DNA from: Obrimoposthia wandeli
Taxonomy: Eukaryota
DNA length: 64,000 bases
Direction: 5' to 3'
Assembly (NCBI GenBank): GCA_977020255.1
Contig: CDROCS010000253.1
Location: 1,240,001-1,304,000 of the forward strand
This document shows positions 32,780 through 46,821 of this stretch, in pieces. Below the pieces are notes generated by a model, which saw only the letters and a list, made by a program, of their open reading frames with translations, did not search any database and was not told the origin of the DNA. The position numbers and the translations under genes were made by a program. The first letter of the stretch is position 1. Each line of letters starts with the position of its first letter.

Positions 32780-32903
32780 ACTTCTTTTGCTATCATAGGG
32801 TATGACGATATTTTTTAACCATGTTAACTTCATAAAAAGCATCATATCCTCTTATTTATCATCAATATAATCAGTAAGTCTTTAATAGAACTTGGAATGT
32901 AAA

Positions 32904-33224
32904 ATGTCTTTTCTTATTCATCAATTTAATTTTACCAACCCCCGTTGGGCTGTTTTTTCTCGAATATTGGCAGCCATTTTTGGCGGGTATGCTTTAGCAA
33001 CCTCTAGTTCTCTTTTTATTGGCCAATTATTATTAACTAGTGTGGGCAAATATCAAGCTATTCATATTGGCTTATTGCTCTCTTTTCTTGTGTACGCTTG
33101 TGCCGCCATGTGGGTATTTTCAGTATCAAGTGCCAATAAAGCGTGGTTAGGGCTAATCAAACTTAATGTTGGCTTTGTTGTAGGAACCTGGTTATTACTG
33201 CAGCTTAATGGTGCGACTAGCTAA
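32904..33224 (+). CDS. DUF3649-like small membrane protein
   Basis: SRILAAIFGGYALA, LLSFLVYACAAMWVF, AW.GL; first gene of the PepSY operon. Confidence 0.75.
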   Translation: MSFLIHQFNFTNPRWAVFSRILAAIFGGYALATSSSLFIGQLLLTSVGKYQAIHIGLLLSFLVYACAAMWVFSVSSANKAWLGLIKLNVGFVVGTWLLLQLNGATS

Positions 33225-34879
33225 TGAAAGATAACTTTAGACAATCAATGAAGTGGTTTCATACTTGGGTTGGCCTTATTGTTGGCTGGATCTTATTTTT
33301 CATGTTTTTAACGGGTACGCTCGGTTATTTCTATCATGAAATTACCCGTTGGATGGAACCGGAAAGACCATTTATTGAGCATAACATCAGTAATGAACAA
33401 TTAATTAATATTGCTCAAACATACCTGAAAAAAAATGCTCAGGGCGTTGATGAATGGGATATTAAGTTACCTAATGTTCGTAATCAAAACCTACGAGTCG
33501 GTTGGCGCCATGTACCAGAAGAGGGTAAAAAACGTGGTCAATATAAAACAAAAGTATTAAATATAACGACAGGCGAAAAAGTTGAGAGTCGTGCAACAGG
33601 TGGAGGCCGATTACTCTATAGAATGCATTATCGTTTGCATTATTTATCAACCAAAATCAGTTATTGGATTGTTGGTTTCTGTGCCATGTTAATGCTGTTG
33701 GCTGTGATCACCGGTGTTGTGATACATAAGAAAATATTCACCGACTTTTTTACTTTTAGAGCAAAAAAAGGCTTACCTGGCTGGTTAGATATTCACAATG
33801 TACTAAGTGTTATTGCGCTGCCATTTCACTTTATGATCACTTACAGTGGTTTACTTTTTTTCCTTTTTACCTACATGGCGTTAAGTACTAATTTACAAAC
33901 CAATGAAGATGAATATAGTGAAATGCGCACAGAAATATACCCACGGACAGCGTATTTAGATAGTGCTAATCAACCAGCAGACATGCTGGATATTTCATCG
34001 TTATACCAACAAGCAAAAAATAGCTGGAAAGCAGATGAACTAAGCCATATAGAAATGTATGCTGCTGATGATATTAATGCTCAGGTAGTCTTTGTTCGTC
34101 ACGAAACGGATATTACTTATAACCCGGATGATGAAGTTACTGTTAGTGCAGTTACCGGTGATGTTATAACGAAACCAACAAAACAGTACACCGCCGCGGG
34201 TATGATTCATAATGGCTTCTTCTCTTTGCATGAAGGCCAGTTCGCCGGACCTATTGCGCGTTGGATATACTTTTTCACTGGTCTTATTGGTACTGCAATG
34301 ATTGCCTCCGGATTAATTTTGTGGACAACGAAACGTAAACCTCAACAAATGAAGAAACCAAATGGACCTGATTTTGGTTACCGACTAGTTGAGCAACTCA
34401 ATATTGGTACTATTGTCGGTTTACCTATCGCTATTTGCATGTATTTCTATGCTAATCGGTTATTACCAGTAGATATGGTCGAGCGCGTAAACTGGGAAGC
34501 CAATGTGATGTTTATCAGTTGGGCAGTGCTATTAATATATCCGGCATTTCGTCCCGCTTATAAGGCGTGGCCTGAGCAATTACAACTTGCGGCATTAGCT
34601 TATATGACGCTACCGCTAGTGAATATATTAACCACAGATAAACACCTCATTAATAGTGTGTCGAATCAGGATTGGGGTCTTGCTGCTTTTGATATGATCT
34701 TTTTGGTTATTGGTTGTTGTTTTGCTTTTTCAGCCTATAAATATAAGATACTTCAGGTTGATAAAAAATTTAGGAAACCGACAATAAGGCAAGCTGCTAA
34801 ACAAGAAGAAAAACAAAGTGAAGTATTCGGAAATGAAGCCTTATTGAACGTACCAAAAGTAAGTAAGGGCAATAGTTAA
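33224..34879 (+). CDS. PepSY-associated TM protein (iron-uptake reductase-like)
   Basis: WFHTWVGL, YRMHY.LH, WLDIHN, LHEGQFAG His motifs. Confidence 0.9.
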   Translation: MKDNFRQSMKWFHTWVGLIVGWILFFMFLTGTLGYFYHEITRWMEPERPFIEHNISNEQLINIAQTYLKKNAQGVDEWDIKLPNVRNQNLRVGWRHVPEEGKKRGQYKTKVLNITTGEKVESRATGGGRLLYRMHYRLHYLSTKISYWIVGFCAMLMLLAVITGVVIHKKIFTDFFTFRAKKGLPGWLDIHNVLSVIALPFHFMITYSGLLFFLFTYMALSTNLQTNEDEYSEMRTEIYPRTAYLDSANQPADMLDISSLYQQAKNSWKADELSHIEMYAADDINAQVVFVRHETDITYNPDDEVTVSAVTGDVITKPTKQYTAAGMIHNGFFSLHEGQFAGPIARWIYFFTGLIGTAMIASGLILWTTKRKPQQMKKPNGPDFGYRLVEQLNIGTIVGLPIAICMYFYANRLLPVDMVERVNWEANVMFISWAVLLIYPAFRPAYKAWPEQLQLAALAYMTLPLVNILTTDKHLINSVSNQDWGLAAFDMIFLVIGCCFAFSAYKYKILQVDKKFRKPTIRQAAKQEEKQSEVFGNEALLNVPKVSKGNS

Positions 34880-35199
34880 TGTTATTACTCACCAGTTTAT
34901 GCTTTACCGCCATGGTGTTTTTTTGTTTAGCGATGAGTAAACACCGACAGCAAATATTAGTGCAAGAAGTACCTAACGTTGTAGTACGTTTTTTCCGACC
35001 TGCTGCTTGGTTGTTATTAACGTTCACCGCTTATTTGAGTGTTGAACTATTTGGCTGGTCTATTGGACCTGCGCTTTTATTTGGTGCATTAACAATAGCT
35101 ATTTTATTACTGACTTTATTATTAACTTATAGAGCGAAAATAGTGCCACCAGTGGTTGTTTTTTTACCTTTAGTTGCCCTTATAAATTTTTATAATTAG
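34879..35199 (+). CDS. DUF3325-like membrane protein
   Basis: LAMSKH..Q, GWSIGPAL.FG.LT; TAATG-coupled to the PepSY gene. Confidence 0.8.
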   Translation: MLLLTSLCFTAMVFFCLAMSKHRQQILVQEVPNVVVRFFRPAAWLLLTFTAYLSVELFGWSIGPALLFGALTIAILLLTLLLTYRAKIVPPVVVFLPLVALINFYN

Positions 35200-36452: not shown

Positions 36453-36692
36453 CTTGGTACTGTCAATTTTTTAAGCTAAATCAATAAAACACGTATCACG
36501 AGTAATTATTATTTCCTTCAATCAAAGAAGTGAAAGTATTGGCTAATATGATTTTTTAACGTCTGCCTTAGCTATTATGATCTTGCATCCTAAAAGCGGA
36601 TCGTTAATGTTAGGAATGCGCAAGCAGTCATGCCATTAAAACATTATGAGCTGGCAAAGCAGACTATATACGTGATTAGTTCTTGTCATTTT

Positions 36693-36769
36693 TAGGACTG
36701 CTTTGTGGTAACTGTTGACCTAAAGAATGACCGATAGCTAACGTCAACAATGTGCACAAAGTGATCCTA
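36693..36769. repeat. Palindromic intergenic element
   Basis: Nested IRs tagga/tccta, ctttgtg/cacaaag, gttgac/gtcaac. Confidence 0.5.
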
Positions 36770-37048
36770 TTTTTTAGTAGAAAACCTAATGTTATTCACT
36801 GGTCATAGTGAATGTCATAAGGTGACTCAATTGGTCACTCAAAATGAAGCATTGATAAAGCCTATAATCACGTTAATCTTGTTAATAATTTAATGTATTG
36901 ATTTTACTTAAGCACCTAGCACTCATTATCTAGAGTTCAGCTTAGGTAAGTAATGAAAGCTCTCCCTGCATGTTTTTGAACCCCAGCAAATAAATTCACT
37001 AACCATAAAAAAATCTGATTTGGAAAATTTCAACATAGTGTAAATATT

Positions 37049-37070
37049 CTGCAATATTTATGTCACAAAT
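37049..37070 (+). promoter_or_regulatory. Possible Pho box
   Basis: 11-bp-periodic CTGCAATATTT ATGTCACAAAT resembles CTGTCAT-type repeats. Confidence 0.35.
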
Positions 37071-37094
37071 CTCATTTATTATATTTGCAAACAT

Positions 37095-37108
37095 CTGGTC
37101 TAGACCAG
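37095..37108. promoter_or_regulatory. PhnR (GntR/HutC-type) operator upstream of the TonB receptor
   Basis: Perfect palindrome CTGGTCTAGACCAG; same 12-bp core at 45835; fits the HutC-subfamily GT-N-TA-N-AC pattern. Confidence 0.85.
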
Positions 37109-37141
37109 TATTTGTAATAATAGAATATATGGGGATATAAC

Positions 37142-39979
37142 ATGATGAAGTTAAAACCGATAGCGGCAACGTTATTAGCGCTGAGCAGCTTTAACGCGCT
37201 TGCGGACGGCACTATTTATGGTCTAGTCAGTGATGTCACTGGCGTGTTGTCAGGGGCTAAAATCTCTTTGCTAGGCAGTAATGTTCAAACCGCTACCGAT
37301 GCTAAGGGCCAGTTTACCCTCAACTACCTTCCTGTTGGAAAACAAACACTGCGTATTAAATATATTGGTTATTCCTCTTCTGATTATGACATTGTTGTTA
37401 TTGACGATAAATCTACCGATTTAGGTAATTTAAAAGTCAATGTGAGCGATGACACCATGGAAGAAGTGGTTGCGGTTGGTTATATGCGTCGTGGCGCTAT
37501 GCTGTCTGTGAACATGCAAAAAGAATCCAACAACATTAAAAATGTTATGTCGGCTGATGGTATCGGTAAATTACCCGATCGTAATGCTGCTGAAGCTTTA
37601 CAGCGTATGCCAGGTGTATCAATAGAACGAGATCAAGGAGAAGGACGTTTTGTTGCCATACGTGGTTTACCTGCGCAGTGGAACTCAACCTCTATTAACG
37701 GTGACCGCCTACCTACCGCAGAAGAAGAAACAACGAGTCGCGCCGTTGCTTTAGATTTTTTTCCAACTGACATGATTGAGATGGTCGAAGTGACCAAAGC
37801 GCTTACTCCTGATATGGAAGGTGATGCTGTTGGTGGAAATGTTAATTTTATTACCCGTCGTGCCCCGGATGAACGGACATTATCGATAAATGTCGGCGCG
37901 GGCGCTTCAGAAAAAGCGGAAGGTGGTAGTCAATCGCTTAATTTACTTTATGGTGATAGATCTGATGATGGAAAATTTGGTTTTTTAATTAACGGTACCG
38001 CTTGGATTCGTGATTGGGCAACCGATAACTATGAACCTCGTCGTGCTATTGATGATGATGGTATTGCAGGTGTTCATCGCTTAGAGCTAAGAGATTATAC
38101 CGGTACACGCAGTACTTACGGTCTGAATATGTCGGGTGAATACTTACTTGATAACGGTTTGGTTTATGCCAAAGCAATGTACGGTACGTTATCAGATGAA
38201 GAGACACATTATAAAACCCGTGTTCGCTATAATAAAAATCGCGTTGAGCTTCAGCATATTTATAATGAATTAAATACAGAAATGCACGGTTTTGAAGTGG
38301 GTGGTGAATATGATTTTGATATTAATACTCGTATGGAATGGAAACTAAGTACCTATCAAAATCAGTTTGAATATGGCGACATACCTAATAAAGAAGACAA
38401 TGCTTATTACGTTGTTAAATTCAAACAAAGTGTAGAATTTGATGGTGATGTTGGTATGCGAAATGGCGTTGATACGGGTAGTGGCTTAATTTACAACACA
38501 GTAGACGGCGGTACCGATCCGGCATTAGCAATAGGTACACATTTACCTAGTGACTGGTCAATGGATCCTAGCAAGGCTGTATTAGCAGACGTTGAACTTT
38601 ATGGTATTGATATTAAAGAGCGTGACAAAATTGTTGCTCAATTTGATGTAATTCATGCTTACAATGACAAGTTAGAACTGAAATCTGGCTTTAAATATCG
38701 TAGCAAAGAAAGAAATGCCCGCTTTTACGATAAGTTTTATGGTTGGAATGAAGAAAAATATGGTCCAACGCCAACCATGGCTAAAGTTGCTGAGGATCTA
38801 GGAGTAGCGTTAGTGGATCAACCAGGCCGTGAAGATTACTTAAGTGAATTCTCAATTGATTACCAAGCAATGTTTTCTCAAGTTATACCGGTTAATGACT
38901 TAAAACGTTGGTGGGGTGAGAATCAAGACAAACTCACTTTCCTCGATGATGACTCACAGGTTGTTGAAAATGGTGGCGGACTTAGCCGTAACTTTGACCT
39001 TGAAGAAACGCACATGTCATTTTACGGTATGGCAACGTATAAACCTTCTAGTCAATGGACAATTCTTGGCGGTATCCGAGCCACACAAACTAAAACTGAT
39101 GTGTATGGTTTTGTCGCAGTTGAAAGTGAGGACGGCACTTCGGTAGAGCAAGAGAACGGTAGTAAGGATTATTGGTCAATACTGCCTTCAATTCATGCAA
39201 CTTATCATGTAAATGACATGAGTAATGTTCGTCTGGCCTTAACGCGCACGTTTTCGAGACCTGATTTTGGTCAGCTTTCTCCAGGGTCAACCTATTCAGA
39301 AATGGAAAACCAGTTAAACTCCGGCAATCCAGAGCTAGACCCGACCTACGCCAATAACTTTGATCTTATGTACGAACACTACTTCGATGAAACGGGCATT
39401 ATTTCTCTAGGTTATTTCTATAAACAGATTATTGATCCTGTCTTTACTCAATCTTATCAAGGTATCTATAGAGATCAAACCGTCTTAATAAAAAGCCCGC
39501 TTAATGGCGACGATGCTTGGTTACATGGTGTTGAATTTGCGCTTAATACCAGTTTAGGTTTTATCAGTGACGAGCTTAATAACTTTGGATTTGGTTTTAA
39601 CTTTACCTTAATGGACTCGGAAATGAATATTCCCGAACGCGCCGATACCGTTAAAGTACCTAGACAAGCTGATGAGTTATTTAACGTCGGTATGTACTAC
39701 GATAATGGTACTTTTGCGACGCGTATCGCGGTGAATCATAAAGGTGAATACATAGAAGACTTTGGTAGTGAAGCTGCGCACGATACCTACTATGGTGACT
39801 ACACTAGCGTTGACTTTAGTGCCTCGTACAACATCACATCAAAAGCAATGCTTTATGTTGAAGTAAATAACTTAACGGATGAGCCATTACAGTACTTTAC
39901 TGGCTCTGAGCAGCGTCCAAATCAAATTGAATACTACGGTATTCGTGGGCAAGTAGGCTTTAAATACGACTTTTATTAA
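37142..39979 (+). CDS. TonB-dependent receptor with N-terminal beta-sandwich domain
   Basis: Signal peptide, EEVVAVG TonB-box region, plug AEALQRMPGVSIERDQGEGRFVAIRG, C-terminal VNNLTDEP...GFKYDFY. Confidence 0.95.
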   Translation: MMKLKPIAATLLALSSFNALADGTIYGLVSDVTGVLSGAKISLLGSNVQTATDAKGQFTLNYLPVGKQTLRIKYIGYSSSDYDIVVIDDKSTDLGNLKVNVSDDTMEEVVAVGYMRRGAMLSVNMQKESNNIKNVMSADGIGKLPDRNAAEALQRMPGVSIERDQGEGRFVAIRGLPAQWNSTSINGDRLPTAEEETTSRAVALDFFPTDMIEMVEVTKALTPDMEGDAVGGNVNFITRRAPDERTLSINVGAGASEKAEGGSQSLNLLYGDRSDDGKFGFLINGTAWIRDWATDNYEPRRAIDDDGIAGVHRLELRDYTGTRSTYGLNMSGEYLLDNGLVYAKAMYGTLSDEETHYKTRVRYNKNRVELQHIYNELNTEMHGFEVGGEYDFDINTRMEWKLSTYQNQFEYGDIPNKEDNAYYVVKFKQSVEFDGDVGMRNGVDTGSGLIYNTVDGGTDPALAIGTHLPSDWSMDPSKAVLADVELYGIDIKERDKIVAQFDVIHAYNDKLELKSGFKYRSKERNARFYDKFYGWNEEKYGPTPTMAKVAEDLGVALVDQPGREDYLSEFSIDYQAMFSQVIPVNDLKRWWGENQDKLTFLDDDSQVVENGGGLSRNFDLEETHMSFYGMATYKPSSQWTILGGIRATQTKTDVYGFVAVESEDGTSVEQENGSKDYWSILPSIHATYHVNDMSNVRLALTRTFSRPDFGQLSPGSTYSEMENQLNSGNPELDPTYANNFDLMYEHYFDETGIISLGYFYKQIIDPVFTQSYQGIYRDQTVLIKSPLNGDDAWLHGVEFALNTSLGFISDELNNFGFGFNFTLMDSEMNIPERADTVKVPRQADELFNVGMYYDNGTFATRIAVNHKGEYIEDFGSEAAHDTYYGDYTSVDFSASYNITSKAMLYVEVNNLTDEPLQYFTGSEQRPNQIEYYGIRGQVGFKYDFY

Positions 39980-39989
39980 TCGTATGTTT

Positions 39990-40018
39990 AGAGAGGTAGG
40001 GTTTGAACCTACCTCTCT
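39990..40018 (+). terminator. Hairpin between the TonB receptor and the MFS gene
   Basis: agagaggtagg-N7-cctacctctct. Confidence 0.65.
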
Positions 40019-40056
40019 TATTTCAAGTTTATTTTTCTCGGTAAGGTAAATGTTCC

Positions 40057-41379
40057 ATGTCTAAAATTCAACGTTACTTACAGCAAAGTCATACGATTAT
40101 TTTTGTTATCTATGCGTCATCAGCCGCTTTCATGACTTACTTTTGCATGTACGCCTTTCGTAAACCATTTACCGCAGCAAGTTACGAGCAAGTGGGAAGT
40201 TTATGGGATTTACTCGACTTTAAAGTGGCGATTGTTCTCGCCCAAGTACTGGGGTACTTATTATCAAAATTCATTGGTATAAAAATTATTTCCGAGTTAA
40301 CTGCCAATAAACGTACTGTTTTTTTACTTTGTTTGATTTTTGTTGCTCAACTGGCTTTGATTTTATTTGCTGTCGTGCCTGAAACATGGAAACCCTTAAT
40401 GATGTTTATTAATGGCATTCCACTGGGCATGGTCTGGGGTATTGTTTTTAGCTTTCTTGAAGGTCGTAAAACCACAGAGATACTCGGCGCTTTTTTAAGT
40501 ATTACCTTTATTATTGCTTCGGGTTTAGTACGCACCGTTGGGCAGTGGTTACTCGTTGAAATACAGATACCAGAGTTTTGGATGCCCGCAACAACAGGCG
40601 CACTATTTTTATTACCTTTGTGTATTTCGGTATTTTTATTGGCACAAATACCCCCGCCATCGGCAAGTGATCGTTGCGCTCGTCAAGAGCGTAAACCAAT
40701 GAATAGGCAGCAACGTTGGGCATTTTTCTGCCGCTTGGCACCGGGAATTTCATTATTGATCGCTAGCTTTTTATTATTTACTGGCTTACGAGATTTTCGC
40801 GACAATTTTTCTGCCGAAATCTGGCAAGCACTGGGTTACGGTGAAGAGCCTGCAATTTTTGCCTATGCCGGTATCCGCATGGCGATGATTGTTTTAGTGG
40901 CTTTAGCGGCGATGGTAATGATTAAAAATAACTGTATCGCTTTTTTAAGTAACCATGGCTTTATCTTATTGGGTTGTTTGTTATTAGGCGGCACTACCTA
41001 TGCTTTTGAGCAACAGCTTATCGATGGCAAAACATGGATGGTTTGGTTGGGCGCAGGGCTTTACATTGCCTATATCCCCTACAACTGTTTTTTATTTGAC
41101 CGCATGATTTCTGCGGTTGGCTCTACCGCAAATGTAGGATTTTTACTTTATCTTGCCGACTCTGCTGGTTACTTAGGTAGCGTCAGCATATTGCTCTATC
41201 GCACTTTTGCTTCACCTGATATTAGCTGGTTAGCTTTTTTTATTCAGCTTTGTTATTTAGTTTCTATTGTCGGTGGCGTACTTGTTTTTAGTTCTGTTAT
41301 TTACTTCAGCCATAAACTATTAGGTTTTGGCAAAAAATCAAATTTTACTCTAACGAAACCTCAGGTCGTATTAGATTAA
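40057..41379 (+). CDS. MFS-like transporter (DUF5690-type)
   Basis: About 12 TM; YFCMYAFRKPFTAA, FLEGRKTTE, LRDFRDNF, YIPYNCFLFDR. Confidence 0.78.
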   Translation: MSKIQRYLQQSHTIIFVIYASSAAFMTYFCMYAFRKPFTAASYEQVGSLWDLLDFKVAIVLAQVLGYLLSKFIGIKIISELTANKRTVFLLCLIFVAQLALILFAVVPETWKPLMMFINGIPLGMVWGIVFSFLEGRKTTEILGAFLSITFIIASGLVRTVGQWLLVEIQIPEFWMPATTGALFLLPLCISVFLLAQIPPPSASDRCARQERKPMNRQQRWAFFCRLAPGISLLIASFLLFTGLRDFRDNFSAEIWQALGYGEEPAIFAYAGIRMAMIVLVALAAMVMIKNNCIAFLSNHGFILLGCLLLGGTTYAFEQQLIDGKTWMVWLGAGLYIAYIPYNCFLFDRMISAVGSTANVGFLLYLADSAGYLGSVSILLYRTFASPDISWLAFFIQLCYLVSIVGGVLVFSSVIYFSHKLLGFGKKSNFTLTKPQVVLD

Positions 41380-41400
41380 TACAATAAAAAAATACATGTC

Positions 41401-41514
41401 TATGTAGTTAACTCAGGAGCTTGCTGTAAACGTCATCTTCGAAGTCTCTGATCGAAGATCCATGGATCCCCGATTAATACACCACGGGGATGACGTCCCT
41501 GAGTCATGAGCATA
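41401..41514. repeat. Double-hairpin REP/RPE-like element
   Basis: cgtcatcttcga...tcgaagatcc atg gatccccg...cggggatgacg (41431-41495) inside outer IR actcagg/cctgagt. Confidence 0.7.
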
Positions 41515-41555
41515 GGCACGAATCAATAAAACAATAATTTTTTAATTTATAGGAG

Positions 41556-42371
41556 ATGATTATGCAAAAAGTTGAAGCAGTTATTTTAGATTGGGCAGGC
41601 ACTGTCGTTGACTATGGCTCTGTAGCACCAACCACTATTTTTGTTGAAGCGTTTAAACGCGCTTACGATTTTGATATTAGCCTAGATGAAGCCAGAGGAC
41701 CTATGGGCATGGGAAAATGGGATCATATCAGAACGTTAGGTTCAACGCCTGCCGTTGCTGAACGCTGGTTGAAGCAGTTTGGCAGCACTATGAGTGATGA
41801 GGTTGTTGATGAAATTTACCATACTTTTATGCCGTTACAAAAAGCGAAAGTAACAGAGCATGCTCAGCCTATTGAAGGGGTATTAGCTACGCTAGCTTGG
41901 TTGAAAACACAAAATATAAAAATAGGTTCTTGTTCTGGTTATCCAAGAGAAGTGATGGAAATATTAGTACCCGCAGCAGCTAAGTATGGTTATGAGCCAG
42001 ATTGTTGGGTTGCTAGCGATGACATTGCCGCGGGTTCTCGTCCTGGTCCATGGATGGCATTACAAAACGTACAAGAGTTAGGTCTGAATAATGTTGCTAA
42101 CTGCATTAAATTTGACGATTCGGCTCCAGGCATTACTGAAGGACTTAATGCTGGTATGTGGACTGTAGGTATCGCCTTAACAGGTAACGCTGTTGGTTTG
42201 ACTGAAAATGAGTGGGCAGCATTAACGCCAGAGCAACAAACTGTATTACGAGACAAAGCTTACGATACCCTGTATCAAGCCGGAGCACATTATGTTGTTG
42301 ATTCACTTGCTGAGGCAAGACCTGTTGTTCAACAAATTATGGCGGCACGTGTTAGAAATCAACGTCCATGA
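41556..42371 (+). CDS. phnX: Phosphonoacetaldehyde hydrolase
   Basis: LDWAGTVVDYGSVAPT, ARGPMGMGKWDHI (Schiff-base Lys), GRPGPWM-like SRPGPWM. Confidence 0.96.
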   Translation: MIMQKVEAVILDWAGTVVDYGSVAPTTIFVEAFKRAYDFDISLDEARGPMGMGKWDHIRTLGSTPAVAERWLKQFGSTMSDEVVDEIYHTFMPLQKAKVTEHAQPIEGVLATLAWLKTQNIKIGSCSGYPREVMEILVPAAAKYGYEPDCWVASDDIAAGSRPGPWMALQNVQELGLNNVANCIKFDDSAPGITEGLNAGMWTVGIALTGNAVGLTENEWAALTPEQQTVLRDKAYDTLYQAGAHYVVDSLAEARPVVQQIMAARVRNQRP

Positions 42372-43762
42372 GTGAACAACAACCCTTTTGGTTTGATCAG
42401 GCATTAGCGACAACCGCTATGCCTGAAATGCCCAAGTTGACTGAAAAAATCACCGCTGACGTGTGTATTATCGGGGGTGGTTTTACCGGTTTATGGACCG
42501 CGATAAAAACTAAAAAACAAGCGCCCGAAAAGCGTATTGTTATTATTGAAAAAGGACTTTGTGGACAAGGCGCTTCAGGCCGTAACGGTGGCTGTATGCT
42601 TACTTTTTCAACCAAGTTTCAATCGTTAATACGTTTTTTTGGCTTAGAAGAAGCAATTCGTTTGGTGAAAGCGTCGGAGCAAGCAGTATTTGATATTGAT
42701 GAATTTTGTAAAACACATCATATCGATGCAGAAATTCGTACGGATGGTGCCATATATACAGCAACTAATAGCCATCAAGTTAATACGCTCAATCAGCCGC
42801 TTGATTTATTATCGCAGCATGATATTAATCAGTGGCAGCAGTTATCGCGAGAACAGGTAAATCGATCAACGGGATCTCATCGTCATTTAGCAGGTATTGA
42901 AAATAAAGCTGGCGGCTCTTTACACCCAGGAAAGCTCGTTTTAGGTTTGGTTAAATACGCTTTATCTATTGGCATTGAGATTTATCAGCAGAGCGAATAT
43001 AAAGATATTCACTGTGGAGAATTTCCCATAATAAAAACCTGTGAAGGAGAAGTTAAGGCTATAAAAGTTGTTTTTGCCGTTAATGCTTGGATGGGTAAAC
43101 TGTTTAAACGTTTTAATCGTCATATCACCTTAGTTTCATCAGACATGATTATTACCAAACCTATACCTGAGCAATTAGCTGAAATAGGTTTGCACCACGG
43201 TAAAGCTATTGCTGATTCACGTATTTTTGTCCATTATTATCGGACAACGCCAGATGGACGGTTAATGCTGGGTAAAGGCGGAAATATGTTCGCCTATAAT
43301 AACCATATGATTCCGGCTTTTGATCAGCCTAGCCGTTATAAAAATATGTTGGTTAATGCCTTTGAACAATTTTTCCCGACACTTGATAAGTCATTTGAAA
43401 CAACGTGGACTGGCGCCTCTGATCGTTCAACAACGGGTTTACCTTTTTTTGGCAGTTTATCAAAAGAAAATAACGTTTTTTATGGCTTAGGTTATTCAGG
43501 TAATGGTGTAGTGCAAAGTTATTTAGGTGGAGATATATTATCCTCTATGGTGTTGTCGGTAGACAATGCGTGGACACGTTCTCGTATGGCAAAAGGCCCC
43601 TTAGGAAGTTTCCCTCCTGAGCCTATTCGATACCTTGGTGCTAACTTAGTTAAACGTTCGGTATTAAGAAAAGAGTTTGCAGAAGATAATGAAAAACCAG
43701 CACAATGGTTTGATTGCCAAATGGCTAAATTTGCCGCTGCAGCAGGTAAATCTGATAAATAA
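42368..43762 (+). CDS. FAD-dependent aminophosphonate oxidoreductase (TIGR03329/PbfC-like)
   Basis: IIGGGFTGLW, GASGRNGGC, DSRIFVHYYRTTPDGRLM, GYSGNGV; ATGA-coupled to phnX. Confidence 0.8.
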   Translation: MSEQQPFWFDQALATTAMPEMPKLTEKITADVCIIGGGFTGLWTAIKTKKQAPEKRIVIIEKGLCGQGASGRNGGCMLTFSTKFQSLIRFFGLEEAIRLVKASEQAVFDIDEFCKTHHIDAEIRTDGAIYTATNSHQVNTLNQPLDLLSQHDINQWQQLSREQVNRSTGSHRHLAGIENKAGGSLHPGKLVLGLVKYALSIGIEIYQQSEYKDIHCGEFPIIKTCEGEVKAIKVVFAVNAWMGKLFKRFNRHITLVSSDMIITKPIPEQLAEIGLHHGKAIADSRIFVHYYRTTPDGRLMLGKGGNMFAYNNHMIPAFDQPSRYKNMLVNAFEQFFPTLDKSFETTWTGASDRSTTGLPFFGSLSKENNVFYGLGYSGNGVVQSYLGGDILSSMVLSVDNAWTRSRMAKGPLGSFPPEPIRYLGANLVKRSVLRKEFAEDNEKPAQWFDCQMAKFAAAAGKSDK

Positions 43763-43957
43763 AAAGCAGTATTATCACGGTATAATACAACAGACTGATA
43801 TCGTTATCGCATGTTCAGTTGTGTTATATCTTGTCTATTAAATCAATGCTTAGAAATCACAAAAAACTACACTTCACTCGCTATTATCATGTTTTTGTAA
43901 AATATTAACTTTATAATAAAGACCTATCGAGCTGTTATTCGTTGAGAAAATATATAA

Positions 43958-44659
43958 ATGTTACTTTATCAAAAAATTAGACAATACATTTTTGCGTTAA
44001 TTGCACAACAACCGACCATGAAAAAATTGCCTTCTGAGCGAGATCTACAAGAGCAATTCAAATCAACCCGTATTACCGTGCGTGAAGCGTTAATGCATTT
44101 AGAGATCGAAGGCATTGTTTATCGTCTAAATAGGAAAGGATGGTTTTTATGCCCACCGAGATTGCAGTGGAATCCAGTACAAAAAGTTAATTTTTATCAG
44201 TTAGCTAAAGAACAGTCGTTCTTAGCTGAAACGAAGCTTGTACATGTCAAAACATTAGCGAAGGGTAATCGTTTTTATTCCAACTTTAGTGATAAAACTG
44301 AAGAAGATGATTCGTCATTATTTGAAATTTGTCGGGTAAGATCGCTGGATGCGCGTCCGGTTATGGTGGAAGAAATATACTGTCAAACGAGAAAATTCAA
44401 GTCTTTAACGGATAAGAACCTTGAAGGGTCAATTACCAATATCTTTACCCAAGATTATGGCGTGATAATAAGTAGAGAAAGTAGTCGTATTTTTGTCACG
44501 GGACTGCCTGCGGATAAAGCACAATATCTACAGTTAAATAGCGGCGCGTCATGCTTGAAAATAGTACGAAAGCGTTTCAGTCCTGACAATGTTTTAGTCG
44601 ATTATAATGTTGAATATTGGGTGCATGGTGCGATAGAAATTAATGTAGCGAGTGAATAA
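43958..44659 (+). CDS. phnR: GntR/HutC-family regulator with UTRA domain
   Basis: LPSERDL..QF..TR.TVREAL..L..EG..YR.NRKGWF; C-terminal UTRA; located in the phn cluster. Confidence 0.85.
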   Translation: MLLYQKIRQYIFALIAQQPTMKKLPSERDLQEQFKSTRITVREALMHLEIEGIVYRLNRKGWFLCPPRLQWNPVQKVNFYQLAKEQSFLAETKLVHVKTLAKGNRFYSNFSDKTEEDDSSLFEICRVRSLDARPVMVEEIYCQTRKFKSLTDKNLEGSITNIFTQDYGVIISRESSRIFVTGLPADKAQYLQLNSGASCLKIVRKRFSPDNVLVDYNVEYWVHGAIEINVASE

Positions 44660-44721
44660 ATAAGGTACTTAGGTCATATGGCCAAGCGTAGACCTTATGT
44701 ATCCACTGTCACGAAAACCTG

Positions 44722-45822
44722 TTATTTCCAATAAATAGTTTGTTTAACTGCTTCAACTAATTGAATCATATCTTCAGGGTATATTTCGCCAATATTTCCA
44801 ATTCTAAAACAATCGGCGTTTGATACTTTCCCTGGGTAAATAACAAAACCAAGCGCTTTCAATTTTTGATAAAACTGTTTGAAGTTATAGCTAGGCTCTG
44901 CTGGTGATAAAAAAGAAGTAATAATAGGCGATTGTAATTCGTCAGGTAATAACGTTTGAAAGCCGAGTTCACGCATGCCTCGTACTAGTATTGATTGATT
45001 TTCTGCATAACGTTTAGCACGTGCCTTGATGCCTTGTTCATCATCTAATTCTATTAATGCTTGGAAAAAAGCTCTAACGACATGGGTAGGTGAAGTAAAC
45101 CGCCATTTACCGTTAGCGGTTTCCATAGTATTCCATTGGTCATATAGGTCTAAACTTAATGACTTTGCTTGGCCTTTACAGCCATTAATAAGCTCACGTT
45201 TCGCAATAACAAAGCCAAAACCGGGTACGCCTTGAATACATTTATTGGCAGAACTGATCATAAAGCCAATATCGAGTTCGCCAATATCAAACTCAATACC
45301 GCCAAAACTAGACATTGCATCGAGAATAAAGGTTATATCGTGTTGTTGGCATAACCTAGCTACGTCTTCAATAGGATTAAGCATACCGGTAGTGGTTTCA
45401 CAATGAACCATGGCCAAATGACTAATGCACTTATCTTCGAGCAGAATGGACTTTATTTCATTGATATCAGGCTGCTGCTCTTCATTATAATTTATCACGG
45501 TATGATTAAGTTTAAGTATTTGGCATATCTCAACCATTCTCTTACCATAAGCACCATTATTAATGATCAATACTTTATCGGTATCGGTAATTGCACTACC
45601 GAGTACAGATTCTACCGATGCCGTACCACTGCCTTGCATTAATACACTTGAATAGCGCTCGTCAGCGGTAGCGTATTTCGTAATTTTACGTCGAATACTT
45701 TCAACAATCTCGATGTTATAATCATCATCCCAAGTACACCAATCTTTTAACATGGCATGCTTAACAGTATCCGATGTTGTTAATGGGCCGGGTGTGAGTA
45801 GTTTGTAGTGTTGCATTATCAT
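44722..45822 (-). CDS. phnW: 2-aminoethylphosphonate:pyruvate transaminase
   Basis: [54 protein letters not shown]. Confidence 0.97.
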
Positions 45823-45834
45823 TACCTTAATTTT

Positions 45835-45846
45835 TGGTCTAGACCA
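45835..45846. promoter_or_regulatory. PhnR operator in the phnW/TSUP divergent region
   Basis: Perfect TGGTCTAGACCA 13 nt upstream of the phnW start. Confidence 0.85.
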
Positions 45847-46065
45847 GATTTTAAGGGGACACTATCTAATGTACAATAGGGATAATATAGGTTTCACAAA
45901 AGTGTCATTTACCGGATAAGAATAGATTATAATACTTGTCAATATAAGTTTTTATTTTCAATAGGTTATACCTTTTTATTGGTGTGTTTCTATTTTATAG
46001 TCGCTTTACTGTGTTTTATTTTAGCAAAAGCTAAACTTTTTATTATTTATGAGCAGGAGACTAAC

Positions 46066-46821
46066 TTGGAGTTAGCATTATTTTCCTATGAACTACTGAC
46101 ATTTTTATTCTTTGTGGCTATCGTTGCTGGCTTTTTAGATACCTTGGCAGGCGGTGGTGGTCTATTAACGCTACCGGCTTTGATGATGGCAGGCTTACCT
46201 CCTTTGTCTGCATTAGCCACTAATAAACTGCAATCAAGTATGGGAGTAGCCACCGCAACCATGATGATGATACGAGGTCGTCGAGTACGCTGGCATCAAG
46301 TGAAGTACTTAATGTTATCAGGCTTTATCGGCTCGGCGATAGGTACAGTGATTGTTCAGTTTGTTGATGCACAAATGCTAACGCTTATTATCCCTGTGGT
46401 GATCACTTTTATCGGACTTTATTTCCTCGTTACACCTACTGTAGATGAAGAAAATAAGCCTGCTAAAGTCTCGTCGGCAAATTATAAGAACTGGGTTATA
46501 CCAATCATTGGTTGTTATGACGGGATTTTTGGCCCAGGTACAGGGTCATTTTTTACCTTGGCTGGTCGAGCGTTACGTGGACAGAAATTTCTTGAAGCGA
46601 CAGCAATAGCCAAAACGCTAAACTTTGCCACTAATATTGCCTCGCTTATTGTTTTCATCTTTGCTGGGCAAGTGATCTGGATGGTTGGGTTAACTATGAT
46701 GGCAGGTCAATTTATTGGAGCGTGGTTAGGTTCACATTACTTGTTCAAAGTACCGGTTAATTACTTACGCTATTTGGTGGTGTTCATGTGTTTTGCTATG
46801 TTAATTAAATATGTACTCTAG
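46066..46821 (+). CDS. TSUP (TauE/SafE, YfcA-like) membrane protein
   Basis: AGFLDTLAGGGGL, LATNKLQS, GCYDGIFGPGTGSF, AKTLNFATN; TTG at 46066 behind AGGAGA (ORF from 45979). Confidence 0.9.
   Translation: MELALFSYELLTFLFFVAIVAGFLDTLAGGGGLLTLPALMMAGLPPLSALATNKLQSSMGVATATMMMIRGRRVRWHQVKYLMLSGFIGSAIGTVIVQFVDAQMLTLIIPVVITFIGLYFLVTPTVDEENKPAKVSSANYKNWVIPIIGCYDGIFGPGTGSFFTLAGRALRGQKFLEATAIAKTLNFATNIASLIVFIFAGQVIWMVGLTMMAGQFIGAWLGSHYLFKVPVNYLRYLVVFMCFAMLIKYVL

Follow-up and report, generated by a model that had tools for sequence, protein, structure and literature searches.

A Conserved Pairing of a TonB-Dependent Receptor and a DUF5690 Carrier Points to Two-Membrane Import of Aminophosphonates

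Introduction

How would a bacterium that carries the enzymes for aminophosphonate degradation, with no ATP-binding cassette (ABC) importer encoded beside them, bring these compounds into the cell? The question is raised by a gene cluster in a stretch of 64,000 nucleotides (hereafter, the window), which corresponds to positions 1240001–1304000 of contig CDROCS010000253.1 (C253) in the Obrimoposthia wandeli assembly GCA_977020255.1. C253 is bacterial and spans at least 4.66 Mb; the parent assembly is 1.35 Gb in 6,912 contigs, with many bacterial contigs among them. In this cluster, a TonB-dependent receptor (TBDR) and an inner-membrane carrier of the family DUF5690 are encoded together with PhnW and PhnX, two enzymes for the degradation of 2-aminoethylphosphonate (AEP). 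An initial annotation, made from the letters of the window, had read the receptor and the carrier as an aminophosphonate uptake route under the control of the regulator PhnR. Each computational check that had been proposed with this annotation turned out in its favor, and on the comparative evidence described below, aminophosphonate uptake is the best-supported reading. The region is probably an aminophosphonate utilization regulon in which a route across two membranes stands in for the usual ABC importer. The pairing of this TBDR with DUF5690 recurs in three bacterial phyla and suggests that natural phosphonates are imported by a previously undescribed two-membrane route.

Three AEP transporters, AepXVW, AepSTU, and AepP, were reported from Pseudomonas putida BIRD-1 (Murphy et al. 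2021, PMC8316502), in a paper that mentions neither TonB nor the outer membrane. TonB receptors are not mentioned in the phosphonate-enzyme papers of the Parma group, either. The initial annotation had stated that no characterized phosphonate TBDR was known, and full-text literature searches likewise found none; curated regulon databases such as RegPrecise were outside these searches and may hold a similar prediction.

Results

Gene Content of the Phosphonate Cluster

The map of open reading frames (ORFs) and the family scans revealed a run of genes on the plus strand in the order TBDR, DUF5690 carrier, phnX, PbfB-type oxidoreductase, and PhnR-like regulator, with phnW transcribed divergently from the minus strand. 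This agrees with the initial annotation, in which the TBDR gene was placed at the head of a same-strand run with a carrier similar to the major facilitator superfamily (MFS), phnX, and an oxidoreductase. The TBDR (37142–39979, plus strand) is 945 aa in length and was identified with both Pfam and NCBIfam. The DUF5690 protein (40057–41379, plus strand; 440 aa), the proposed aminophosphonate importer, matches PF18943 at 529 bits against a cut-off of 25.

The phosphonoacetaldehyde hydrolase gene phnX (41556–42371, plus strand) and the 2-aminoethylphosphonate:pyruvate transaminase gene phnW (44722–45822, minus strand) both exceed the equivalog cut-offs of the phosphonatase pathway, with 329.9 bits for TIGR01422 (cut-off 220) and 580 bits for TIGR02326 (cut-off 401), respectively. 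Overlapping phnX by 4 bp, the gene at 42368–43762 (plus strand) encodes an FAD-dependent aminophosphonate oxidoreductase, which matches TIGR03329 at 671 bits (cut-off 632.8). TIGR03329 is taken here to represent PbfB. Extracts of Escherichia coli expressing Vibrio vulnificus PbfB degraded N-methyl-AEP but not AEP (PMC10590968). Since PbfB acts on N-methyl-AEP and PhnW acts on AEP, the cluster in the window is equipped for both compounds. The regulator gene (43958–44659, plus strand) encodes a GntR/HutC-family protein.

No ABC transporter genes were found in or beside the cluster with the ORF map and the family scans, the flanking genes included. Within the conserved cluster, no inner-membrane transporter other than the DUF5690 protein is encoded, and the catabolic enzymes have no signal peptides.

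The closest homologues of the TBDR, 73–83% identical, are from Thalassotalea, Colwellia, Paraglaciecola, and Pseudoalteromonas, and the source of the contig is therefore considered to be an Alteromonadales bacterium of the Colwelliaceae/Alteromonadaceae type. More distant copies are present in metagenomes from marine biofilm, seawater, and sediment, and near-identical DNA is present in sequencing runs of two organisms; in searches for RNA runs with the locus, the matches were DNA contigs only.

Conservation of the TBDR and DUF5690 Pairing

A synteny survey of the TBDR homologues, which had been proposed with the initial annotation, was performed on the 80 best TBDR homologue loci. They are 43–83% identical to the window TBDR, represent one genome per GTDB species, and were chosen with no criterion on phosphonate genes. 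Neighboring ORFs were clustered, and the number of loci carrying each cluster was counted. The TBDR cluster itself was present in 79 loci, DUF5690 in 74, and PhnX or a PhnX-like HAD hydrolase in 72. A PhnR-type GntR regulator was found in 51 loci, PhnW in 41, the PbfB type in 38, a 392-aa PbfD-type FAD oxidase in 29, a PhnZ-like HD oxygenase in 28, and a phosphodiesterase in 13. The loci are spread over Gammaproteobacteria, Alphaproteobacteria, and Bacteroidota. Thus, ~90% of the 80 loci, from three phyla, combine the TBDR homologue with adjacent genes for DUF5690 and for phosphonate catabolism, as the initial annotation would have it.

The family assignments in these loci vary in strength. 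The 392-aa oxidase is assigned to TIGR03364 in NCBIfam with 337–405 bits (cut-off 285), and this family presumably corresponds to PbfD. The hydrolase is a TIGR01422 phosphonatase in Novosphingobium and Cellvibrio (310–331 bits), and that of Chryseobacterium is of the "PhnX-like" family TIGR03351 with 206 bits, under the cut-off of 219. The best match of the HD protein is the phosphonate HD oxygenase family TIGR03276 (193 bits, below the cut-off of 215). The regulator in Alphaproteobacteria is best matched by the AEP-associated LysR type TIGR03339, also below the cut-off.

In loci without PhnW and PbfB, the PbfD-type oxidase is present in their place. PbfD oxidizes N-methyl-AEP and also acts on AEP (PMC10590968), and can therefore replace PhnW. 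The resulting cassette, TBDR-DUF5690-PbfD-PhnX, was found in Bacteroidota (Chryseobacterium, Tenacibaculum, Aquimarina, and a Cytophagales metagenome-assembled genome), in Alphaproteobacteria (Novosphingobium and Woodsholea, as well as Brevundimonas with only a weak PhnX-like match), and in Gammaproteobacteria (Stenotrophomonas, Cellvibrio, Microbulbifer, and Ferrimonas). The version in Alteromonadales and Pseudoalteromonas includes PbfB, PhnR, and PhnW instead of PbfD. A second contig of the same assembly, which is Bacteroidota-like, also contains a TBDR-DUF5690-PbfD-PhnX-like cassette (C5534:12781–19904). Its TBDR, DUF5690, and PbfD proteins are 57–66% identical to those of Chryseobacterium, and its PhnX-like fragment is 52% identical; no GntR-type operator was found at this cassette.

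The receptor and the carrier vary together: across the loci, the identities of TBDR and of DUF5690 to the window proteins are correlated (Spearman 0.85, n = 73). In the five genomes tested, DUF5690 is encoded once per genome, at the TBDR cluster.

Pseudoalteromonas species have either of two versions of the module, with ~75–78% (L013, L016, L017, L049) and ~51–56% (L044, L046, and others) identity to the window TBDR. All genes of the module shift together between these versions, and this suggests that the module moved as a unit.

The Operator and the PhnR-Type Regulator

Two exact copies of the perfect palindrome TGGTCTAGACCA are present in the window. Operator 1 is a 14-bp perfect palindrome, CTGGTCTAGACCAG, at 37095–37108, with the core TGGTCTAGACCA at 37096–37107, and is situated 35 bp before the ATG of the TBDR gene. 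Operator 2 is TGGTCTAGACCA at 45835–45846, 12 bp upstream of the ATG of phnW. The identical palindromes at the two promoters had been noticed in the initial annotation, and no further exact copy exists in the window. When up to two mismatches were allowed, six matches were found in the window; shuffled sequences had 1.47 on average, and none of 100 reached six. Among the assembly matches listed, the only exact copies on C253 are the two in the cluster.

Assembly-wide, 82 exact matches to TGGTCTAGACCA were found, many of which come from a tandem array at C1421:130060–131191. The array has a 32-bp spacing and at least 34 units, each with TGGTCTAGACCA.

The regulator contains a GntR helix-turn-helix domain (PF00392) and a UTRA domain (PF07702). 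The best match in NCBIfam is PhnR (TIGR03337) at 191.8 bits, which is under the PhnR equivalog cut-off of 296.75, and the next family scores 77 bits. With these two domains, a position beside phnWX, and palindromes at both promoters, the protein can be described as a putative PhnR-like member of the HutC subfamily.

The 80 loci were scanned for the operator with up to two mismatches, and upstream sites were counted at no more than one mismatch within 200 bp. The operator precedes the TBDR gene in 43 of the 49 loci with a PhnR-type regulator, versus 4 of the 28 loci without one (Fisher p = 1.4 × 10−10, which is not a true probability, as the loci are phylogenetically non-independent). Where the PhnR-type regulator is present, the operator is found in almost every locus within ~100 bp upstream of the TBDR start, mostly at 41–46 bp, and mostly at 19–59 bp upstream of phnW, before which it is also conserved in orthologous loci. 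At up to one mismatch, 107 matches were found in 1.68 Mb of loci, 100 of which are within 200 bp upstream of a cluster gene. Further copies are situated before the genes of the phosphodiesterase and a second FAD oxidase, and before DUF5690 where this gene is divergently transcribed. At up to two mismatches, no operator was found before the cluster genes in the loci with an HTH-cupin regulator (Bacteroidota) or a long GntR regulator (Stenotrophomonas), and among the five loci with a LysR regulator (Alphaproteobacteria), one has a single match with two mismatches, inside phnX. The claim of PhnR control thus stands in that the operator tracks the PhnR-type regulator; it needs amendment in that the regulator is below the PhnR equivalog cut-off and that control is probably dual, as described in the next section.

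It is very improbable that the palindromes are bound by another HutC-family regulator, such as a NagR-like or HutC-like protein, or are chance hairpins, with the GntR protein of the cluster not controlling the TBDR gene. The motif does fit the generic HutC-subfamily consensus, the score of the cluster regulator would permit this reading, and the terminator scan flags 37095–37108 as a weak hairpin. Against it, both of the exact copies on the chromosome are in the cluster promoters, the site co-occurs with the cluster regulator and is not found where the regulator is of another type, and it is conserved in position with respect to the start codon.

Promoters and Pho-Box-Like Elements

The alignment of 17 orthologous regions upstream of the TBDR gene revealed two conserved elements in addition to the operator. 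One is an invariant TAnnnT hexamer at 37077–37082 (plus strand), which in the window is TATTAT and is the probable −10 hexamer of the TBDR operon promoter. The other is the block TG(A/C)CAT-N4-ATGTCAC with the invariant residues TGT.A.A at 37049–37066 (plus strand), which in the window reads CTGCAATATTTATGTCAC and comprises two TG(N)CA(Y) repeats 11 bp apart. This block ends 10 bp upstream of the −10 hexamer and occupies the place of a −35 hexamer; the −10 hexamer was missed by a simple promoter scan because there is no −35 hexamer. A PhoB-type promoter is expected to have no −35 hexamer, and the Pho box consists of two 7-bp direct repeats of the TGTCA type, 11 bp apart, which end 10 bp before the −10 hexamer. 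The Pho-box consensus of E. coli is CTGTCATAWAWCTGTCAY, and the TBDR element agrees with it at 14 of 18 positions.

These elements are all in the last ~100 bp of a non-coding AT-rich stretch (36453–37141) that precedes the TBDR gene and is unusually long, ~690 bp.

With a threshold of at least 13 of 18 consensus positions, Pho-box matches were found in 88% of the phnW and 50% of the TBDR upstream regions. As controls, 241 intergenic regions of the same gammaproteobacterial loci were used, and 9% of these had such a match. A second Pho-box-like element, GTTTCACAAAAGTGTCAT, is situated between phnW and the adjoining TauE gene (45891–45908, plus strand) and is reversed relative to phnW; it likewise agrees with the consensus at 14 of 18 positions and is conserved in the closest relatives. 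A forward-oriented box precedes phnW in Pseudoalteromonas, Thalassolituus, and Bermanella. The element at the TBDR promoter is newly described here and suggests joint control by PhoB and PhnR; control of the cluster is probably dual, the Pho-box-like element acting in addition to PhnR.

At phnW, the minus strand has a promoter-like match with the −35 hexamer TGTACA (45875–45870) and the −10 hexamer TAAAAT (45853–45848). Operator 2 is directly downstream of this predicted −10 hexamer, as operator 1 is downstream of that of the TBDR gene. The predicted geometry of both promoters fits repression.

The DUF5690 Carrier

No NCBIfam model covers the DUF5690 protein, and full-text literature searches found no published function for the family. 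The sole mention found is in a Pandoravirus preprint, where the membership in the MFS clan is noted. The AlphaFold2 model of the protein, built with 25 homologues, has a 12-helix MFS fold with a predicted local distance difference test (pLDDT) of 89.7 and a predicted template modeling score of 0.87. In a Foldseek search against PDB, it has 373 matches at E ≤ 0.001, and the 50 best listed are all MFS transporters. The first is SLC37A4/G6PT, a glucose-6-phosphate:phosphate exchanger (E = 1.7 × 10−8, TM-scores 0.62–0.74, ~18% identity). The model is therefore closest in fold to organophosphate:phosphate antiporters, in line with the secondary inner-membrane carrier that the initial annotation had supposed.

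By sequence, phmmer found no match (E ≤ 10) between the DUF5690 protein and a transporter of any kind in PDB, the relatives of GlpT included. The family profile had SLC37A4 as its lone hit in PDB, which is non-significant (E = 1.3). In this marginal alignment, the motifs YxxxYxxRKxF in helix 1 and GYxxSKF in helix 2, which are invariant in DUF5690, are paired with residues of G6PT. From the modeled fold, DUF5690 is concluded to work like an organophosphate-type MFS carrier and is at most a candidate member of the organophosphate antiporter family.

AepP is 28% identical to GlpT (E = 9 × 10−37; PMC8316502), and DUF5690 is thus different in family from AepP. The identification of DUF5690 with AepP was rejected on this ground, that is, indirectly, AepP being judged by its published likeness to GlpT. 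AepP and DUF5690 are alike as single-component MFS carriers related, in the case of DUF5690 by modeled fold, to organophosphate:phosphate antiporters, and in serving AEP import for PhnW-dependent catabolism, a role that for DUF5690 is proposed here. They are unlike in that DUF5690 is a separate Pfam family and has no sequence match to a GlpT-family chain in PDB beyond the marginal profile hit. The comparison with SLC37A4/G6PT and the GlpT/UhpT family is similar: they provide the best fold match and share the basic motifs of transmembrane helix 1 (R-K) and transmembrane helix 2 (S-K-F) in the marginal alignment, but the identity is not significant, and the substrate of DUF5690 is probably a phosphonate and not a sugar phosphate.

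A reverse survey for DUF5690 was performed on even samples of 400 Pseudomonadota and 400 Bacteroidota species genomes, each centered on a known carrier. Proteins over the cut-off were found in 5 further genomes of Pseudomonadota (~1%) and 34 further genomes of Bacteroidota (~9%). In Bacteroidota, 25 of the 34 DUF5690 loci have PbfD, PhnX, PhnW, the HD oxygenase, or the phosphodiesterase within 10 kb. In the Pseudomonadota sample, two loci are full phosphonate clusters with the TBDR type of the window. The other four (L101, L103, L104, and L105, in genomes G124, G193, G241, and G298) adjoin a different TBDR and no phosphonate enzymes, and are accompanied by PhoD, by GDPD and Metallophos, or by a GntR regulator. 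DUF5690 thus looks like a carrier that habitually stands behind TonB-dependent receptors in phosphorus acquisition, with the phosphonate-linked form being the commonest. This hints at a general pairing of TBDR and DUF5690 for organophosphorus import.

These four loci bear on a further alternative, that TBDR and DUF5690 serve general scavenging of organophosphate or phosphate within the Pho regulon and are co-located with phn genes because all of them serve phosphorus acquisition. Such a role would also agree with the Pho-box-like elements at both promoters and with sugar-phosphate:phosphate antiporters as the closest folds. The TBDR clade of the window, on the other hand, is tied to phosphonate enzymes in ~90% of its loci, and the TBDR gene is placed under a substrate-type GntR operator common to phnW. 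In addition, the cytoplasmic enzymes need an inner-membrane importer of phosphonates, and the conserved cluster offers no candidate other than DUF5690. General scavenging is therefore considered improbable for this cluster.

The Receptor and Its Substrate

The TBDR contains a plug domain (PF07715, 57 bits), a β-barrel domain (PF00593, 120 bits), and a CarboxypepD_reg-like N-terminal domain. It belongs to the subfamily TIGR01782 (TonB-Xanth-Caul) with 466.8 bits against a cut-off of 310. Along the protein, a putative signal peptide at ~1–21, the CarboxypepD_reg-like domain at 24–110, a TonB-box-like motif EEVVAVG at 107–113, and the plug at 129–232 are followed by the β-barrel. The signal peptide (MMKLKPIAATLLALSSFNALA, then DG) and the TonB-box-like motif were judged by eye from the translation, and the latter is kept as EEVVxVG in 17 homologues. 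The AlphaFold2 model includes the barrel and an N-terminal β-sandwich with a mean pLDDT of 70.9, and its plug is poorly modeled (below 50). The top folds in PDB are all TBDRs, generic siderophore or metal receptors with 10–14% identity, and the PDB sequence search had the plug of Cir as its sole match. In these sequence and fold searches, no solved TBDR more than 14% identical to that of the window was found. Characteristic members of the subfamily TIGR01782 are receptors for oligosaccharides in Xanthomonas, Caulobacter, and Alteromonadales.

Thirteen of the related loci add a phosphodiesterase of the alkaline phosphatase superfamily, ~590 aa in length, with Phosphodiest/Metalloenzyme domains and a hemopexin repeat. 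Examples are L035:7983–9734, L048:2834–4594, L065:19663–21417, and L082:16167–17984; nine further loci have it. The protein has a Sec or lipoprotein signal peptide, and in most of the gammaproteobacterial loci that carry it, the gene is situated behind the PhnR operator. As a candidate hydrolase of phosphonate esters, putatively acting on phosphonolipid head groups, this enzyme suggests that phosphonate in nature arrives esterified, as lipid head groups or glycans. The phosphodiesterase-hemopexin gene was not found in the cluster of the window or on C253. Because C253 is without it, free AEP or N-methyl-AEP is favored as the ligand here. Possible substrates are free AEP, N-methyl-AEP, and a larger conjugate.

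In the last case, the molecule imported by the TBDR would be larger and bear a phosphonate, for example an AEP ester from a ceramide- or glycerol-phosphonolipid or a fragment of a phosphonoglycan. It would be hydrolyzed in the periplasm, and DUF5690 would take the freed AEP or N-methyl-AEP; the cluster would then be a small phosphonate utilization locus. The oligosaccharide-type subfamily of the receptor, the 13 loci with an exported phosphodiesterase, and the small size of free AEP, which would permit passage through porins, are in its favor. PbfB also points to N-methyl-AEP, which the authors of PMC10590968 tied to invertebrate sphingophosphonolipids. Nevertheless, the phosphodiesterase is missing from the cluster and the chromosome of the window, and the core kept in three phyla consists only of the TBDR, DUF5690, an oxidase or transaminase, and PhnX. 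Release of AEP outside the cell, followed by uptake of free AEP through the TBDR, would account equally well for an exported phosphodiesterase. Import of a larger conjugate is considered less probable than the main reading.

Flanking Genes

Upstream of the cluster, genes for a PepSY_TM protein (551 aa) and a DUF3325 protein are present at 32892–35199, and they are unrelated to the phosphonate cluster. The PepSY_TM and DUF3325 pair frequently accompanies siderophore-type receptors. Downstream, TauE, cytochrome-oxidase-like, and FixG-like genes are present. The TauE/SafE-family (TSUP) membrane protein is encoded at 45979–46821, divergently from phnW, and a perfect TATAAT hexamer (45928–45933) lies downstream of the reversed Pho-box-like element. 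TauE was considered as a member of the regulon and rejected; the gene is present in none of the 80 related loci and is thus probably outside the regulon.

Discussion

Several observations weigh against aminophosphonate uptake by the TBDR and DUF5690. The initial annotation had noted that no PhnSTUV, PhnCDE, or AepXVW genes lie in the cluster. The absence of an ABC system holds for the cluster but not for the chromosome: a PhnD-type ABC binding protein is encoded ~2.8 Mb away (C253:4057613–4058365; TIGR01098, 177 bits, over the cut-off), and it could import phosphonates independently. AEP is a molecule of ~125 Da, small enough for porins, so an energized receptor is not obviously required. Two close loci (L018 and L022) carry TBDR-PhnX-PbfB without DUF5690. 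In three of the five Pseudomonadota genomes of the reverse survey, DUF5690 is found only beside other TBDRs without phosphonate genes, and a fourth has one extra copy of this kind; DUF5690 is therefore not exclusively linked to phosphonates. Its link to the organophosphate antiporters is structural and is not significant at the sequence level. Regarding regulation, the regulator falls under the PhnR equivalog cut-off, and the palindrome is of a type generic for the HutC subfamily, so that the pairing of regulator and site is drawn from their co-occurrence. The Pho-box-like elements were scored against the E. coli consensus, and the box before phnW is reversed in the clade of the window.

The cluster can be compared with the phosphonatase system of Salmonella (PhnWX, PhnR, and PhnSTUV) and the accessory oxidases PbfB, PbfC, and PbfD (PMC10590968). 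The same PhnW, PhnX, and PbfB-type oxidase are found here, and a GntR/UTRA regulator of the PhnR type likewise adjoins them. The window cluster differs in lacking PhnSTUV, uptake being assigned to the TBDR and DUF5690, and in a regulator that scores below the equivalog. The phosphonatase genes of Salmonella belong to the Pho regulon, and membership in the Pho regulon is likely here as well.

Non-iron TBDRs of the TIGR01782 type include SuxA for sucrose, MalA for maltodextrin, and NagA for chitin oligomers, each of which is paired with an inner-membrane MFS carrier. The window cluster resembles these systems in having a specific TBDR of the same NCBIfam subfamily, an MFS carrier, catabolic enzymes in the cytoplasm, and a local repressor, but its gene context indicates an aminophosphonate instead of a carbohydrate. 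What is new is the attachment of such a nutrient route to the PhnWX pathway; both parts are of known kinds. The nearest precedent is from Flavobacterium, in which TBDT/SusCD (Pus) clusters inducible by low phosphate reportedly include phnX and an oxidoreductase gene ("dao") together with TBDTs and permeases (Lidbury et al., preprint 10.1101/719427). They resemble the TBDR-DUF5690-PbfD-PhnX cassette of Bacteroidota; in the preprint, the receptors are not assigned a phosphonate substrate, and DUF5690 is not named.

For the substrates, for the direction and energetics of transport, and for both regulatory mechanisms, we infer the following steps. AEP, N-methyl-AEP, or a small ester of AEP would be transported across the outer membrane by the TBDR with energy from TonB. 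DUF5690 would then carry the phosphonate across the inner membrane by proton symport or in exchange for phosphate. In the cytoplasm, PbfB would oxidize N-methyl-AEP and PhnW would transaminate AEP, both yielding phosphonoacetaldehyde, which PhnX would split into acetaldehyde and phosphate. The PhnR-like repressor would bind TGGTCTAGACCA just past the −10 hexamers of both promoters, presumably to be released by a phosphonate, and PhoB may activate the TBDR promoter under phosphate limitation through the Pho-box-like element.

A broader proposal is held with somewhat more confidence than doubt: TBDR and DUF5690 may form a widespread and unrecognized two-membrane module for organophosphorus import, of which the window clade would be the first phosphonate-specific TBDR, directed to AEP-type head groups that are possibly esterified. 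In some genomes, the exported phosphodiesterase would free these head groups from phosphonolipids and phosphonoglycans of invertebrates or algae, and control would be exerted jointly by PhoB and a substrate-sensing PhnR.

If this is true, DUF5690 gains its first function, and phosphonates join the short list of non-iron TBDR substrates. The cluster would also provide a clean regulatory model, in which a PhoB activator site and a PhnR operator are present on one promoter. Aminophosphonates are a large pool of marine and soil organic phosphorus with a fast turnover. Surveys of their consumers now count the ABC binding proteins PhnD, PhnS, and AepX, as well as AepP, and consumers with the TBDR-DUF5690 route would have been missed. 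The route would explain how phosphonates are acquired by many marine Alteromonadales and Flavobacteriia that have neither AepXVW nor PhnSTUV beside these genes.

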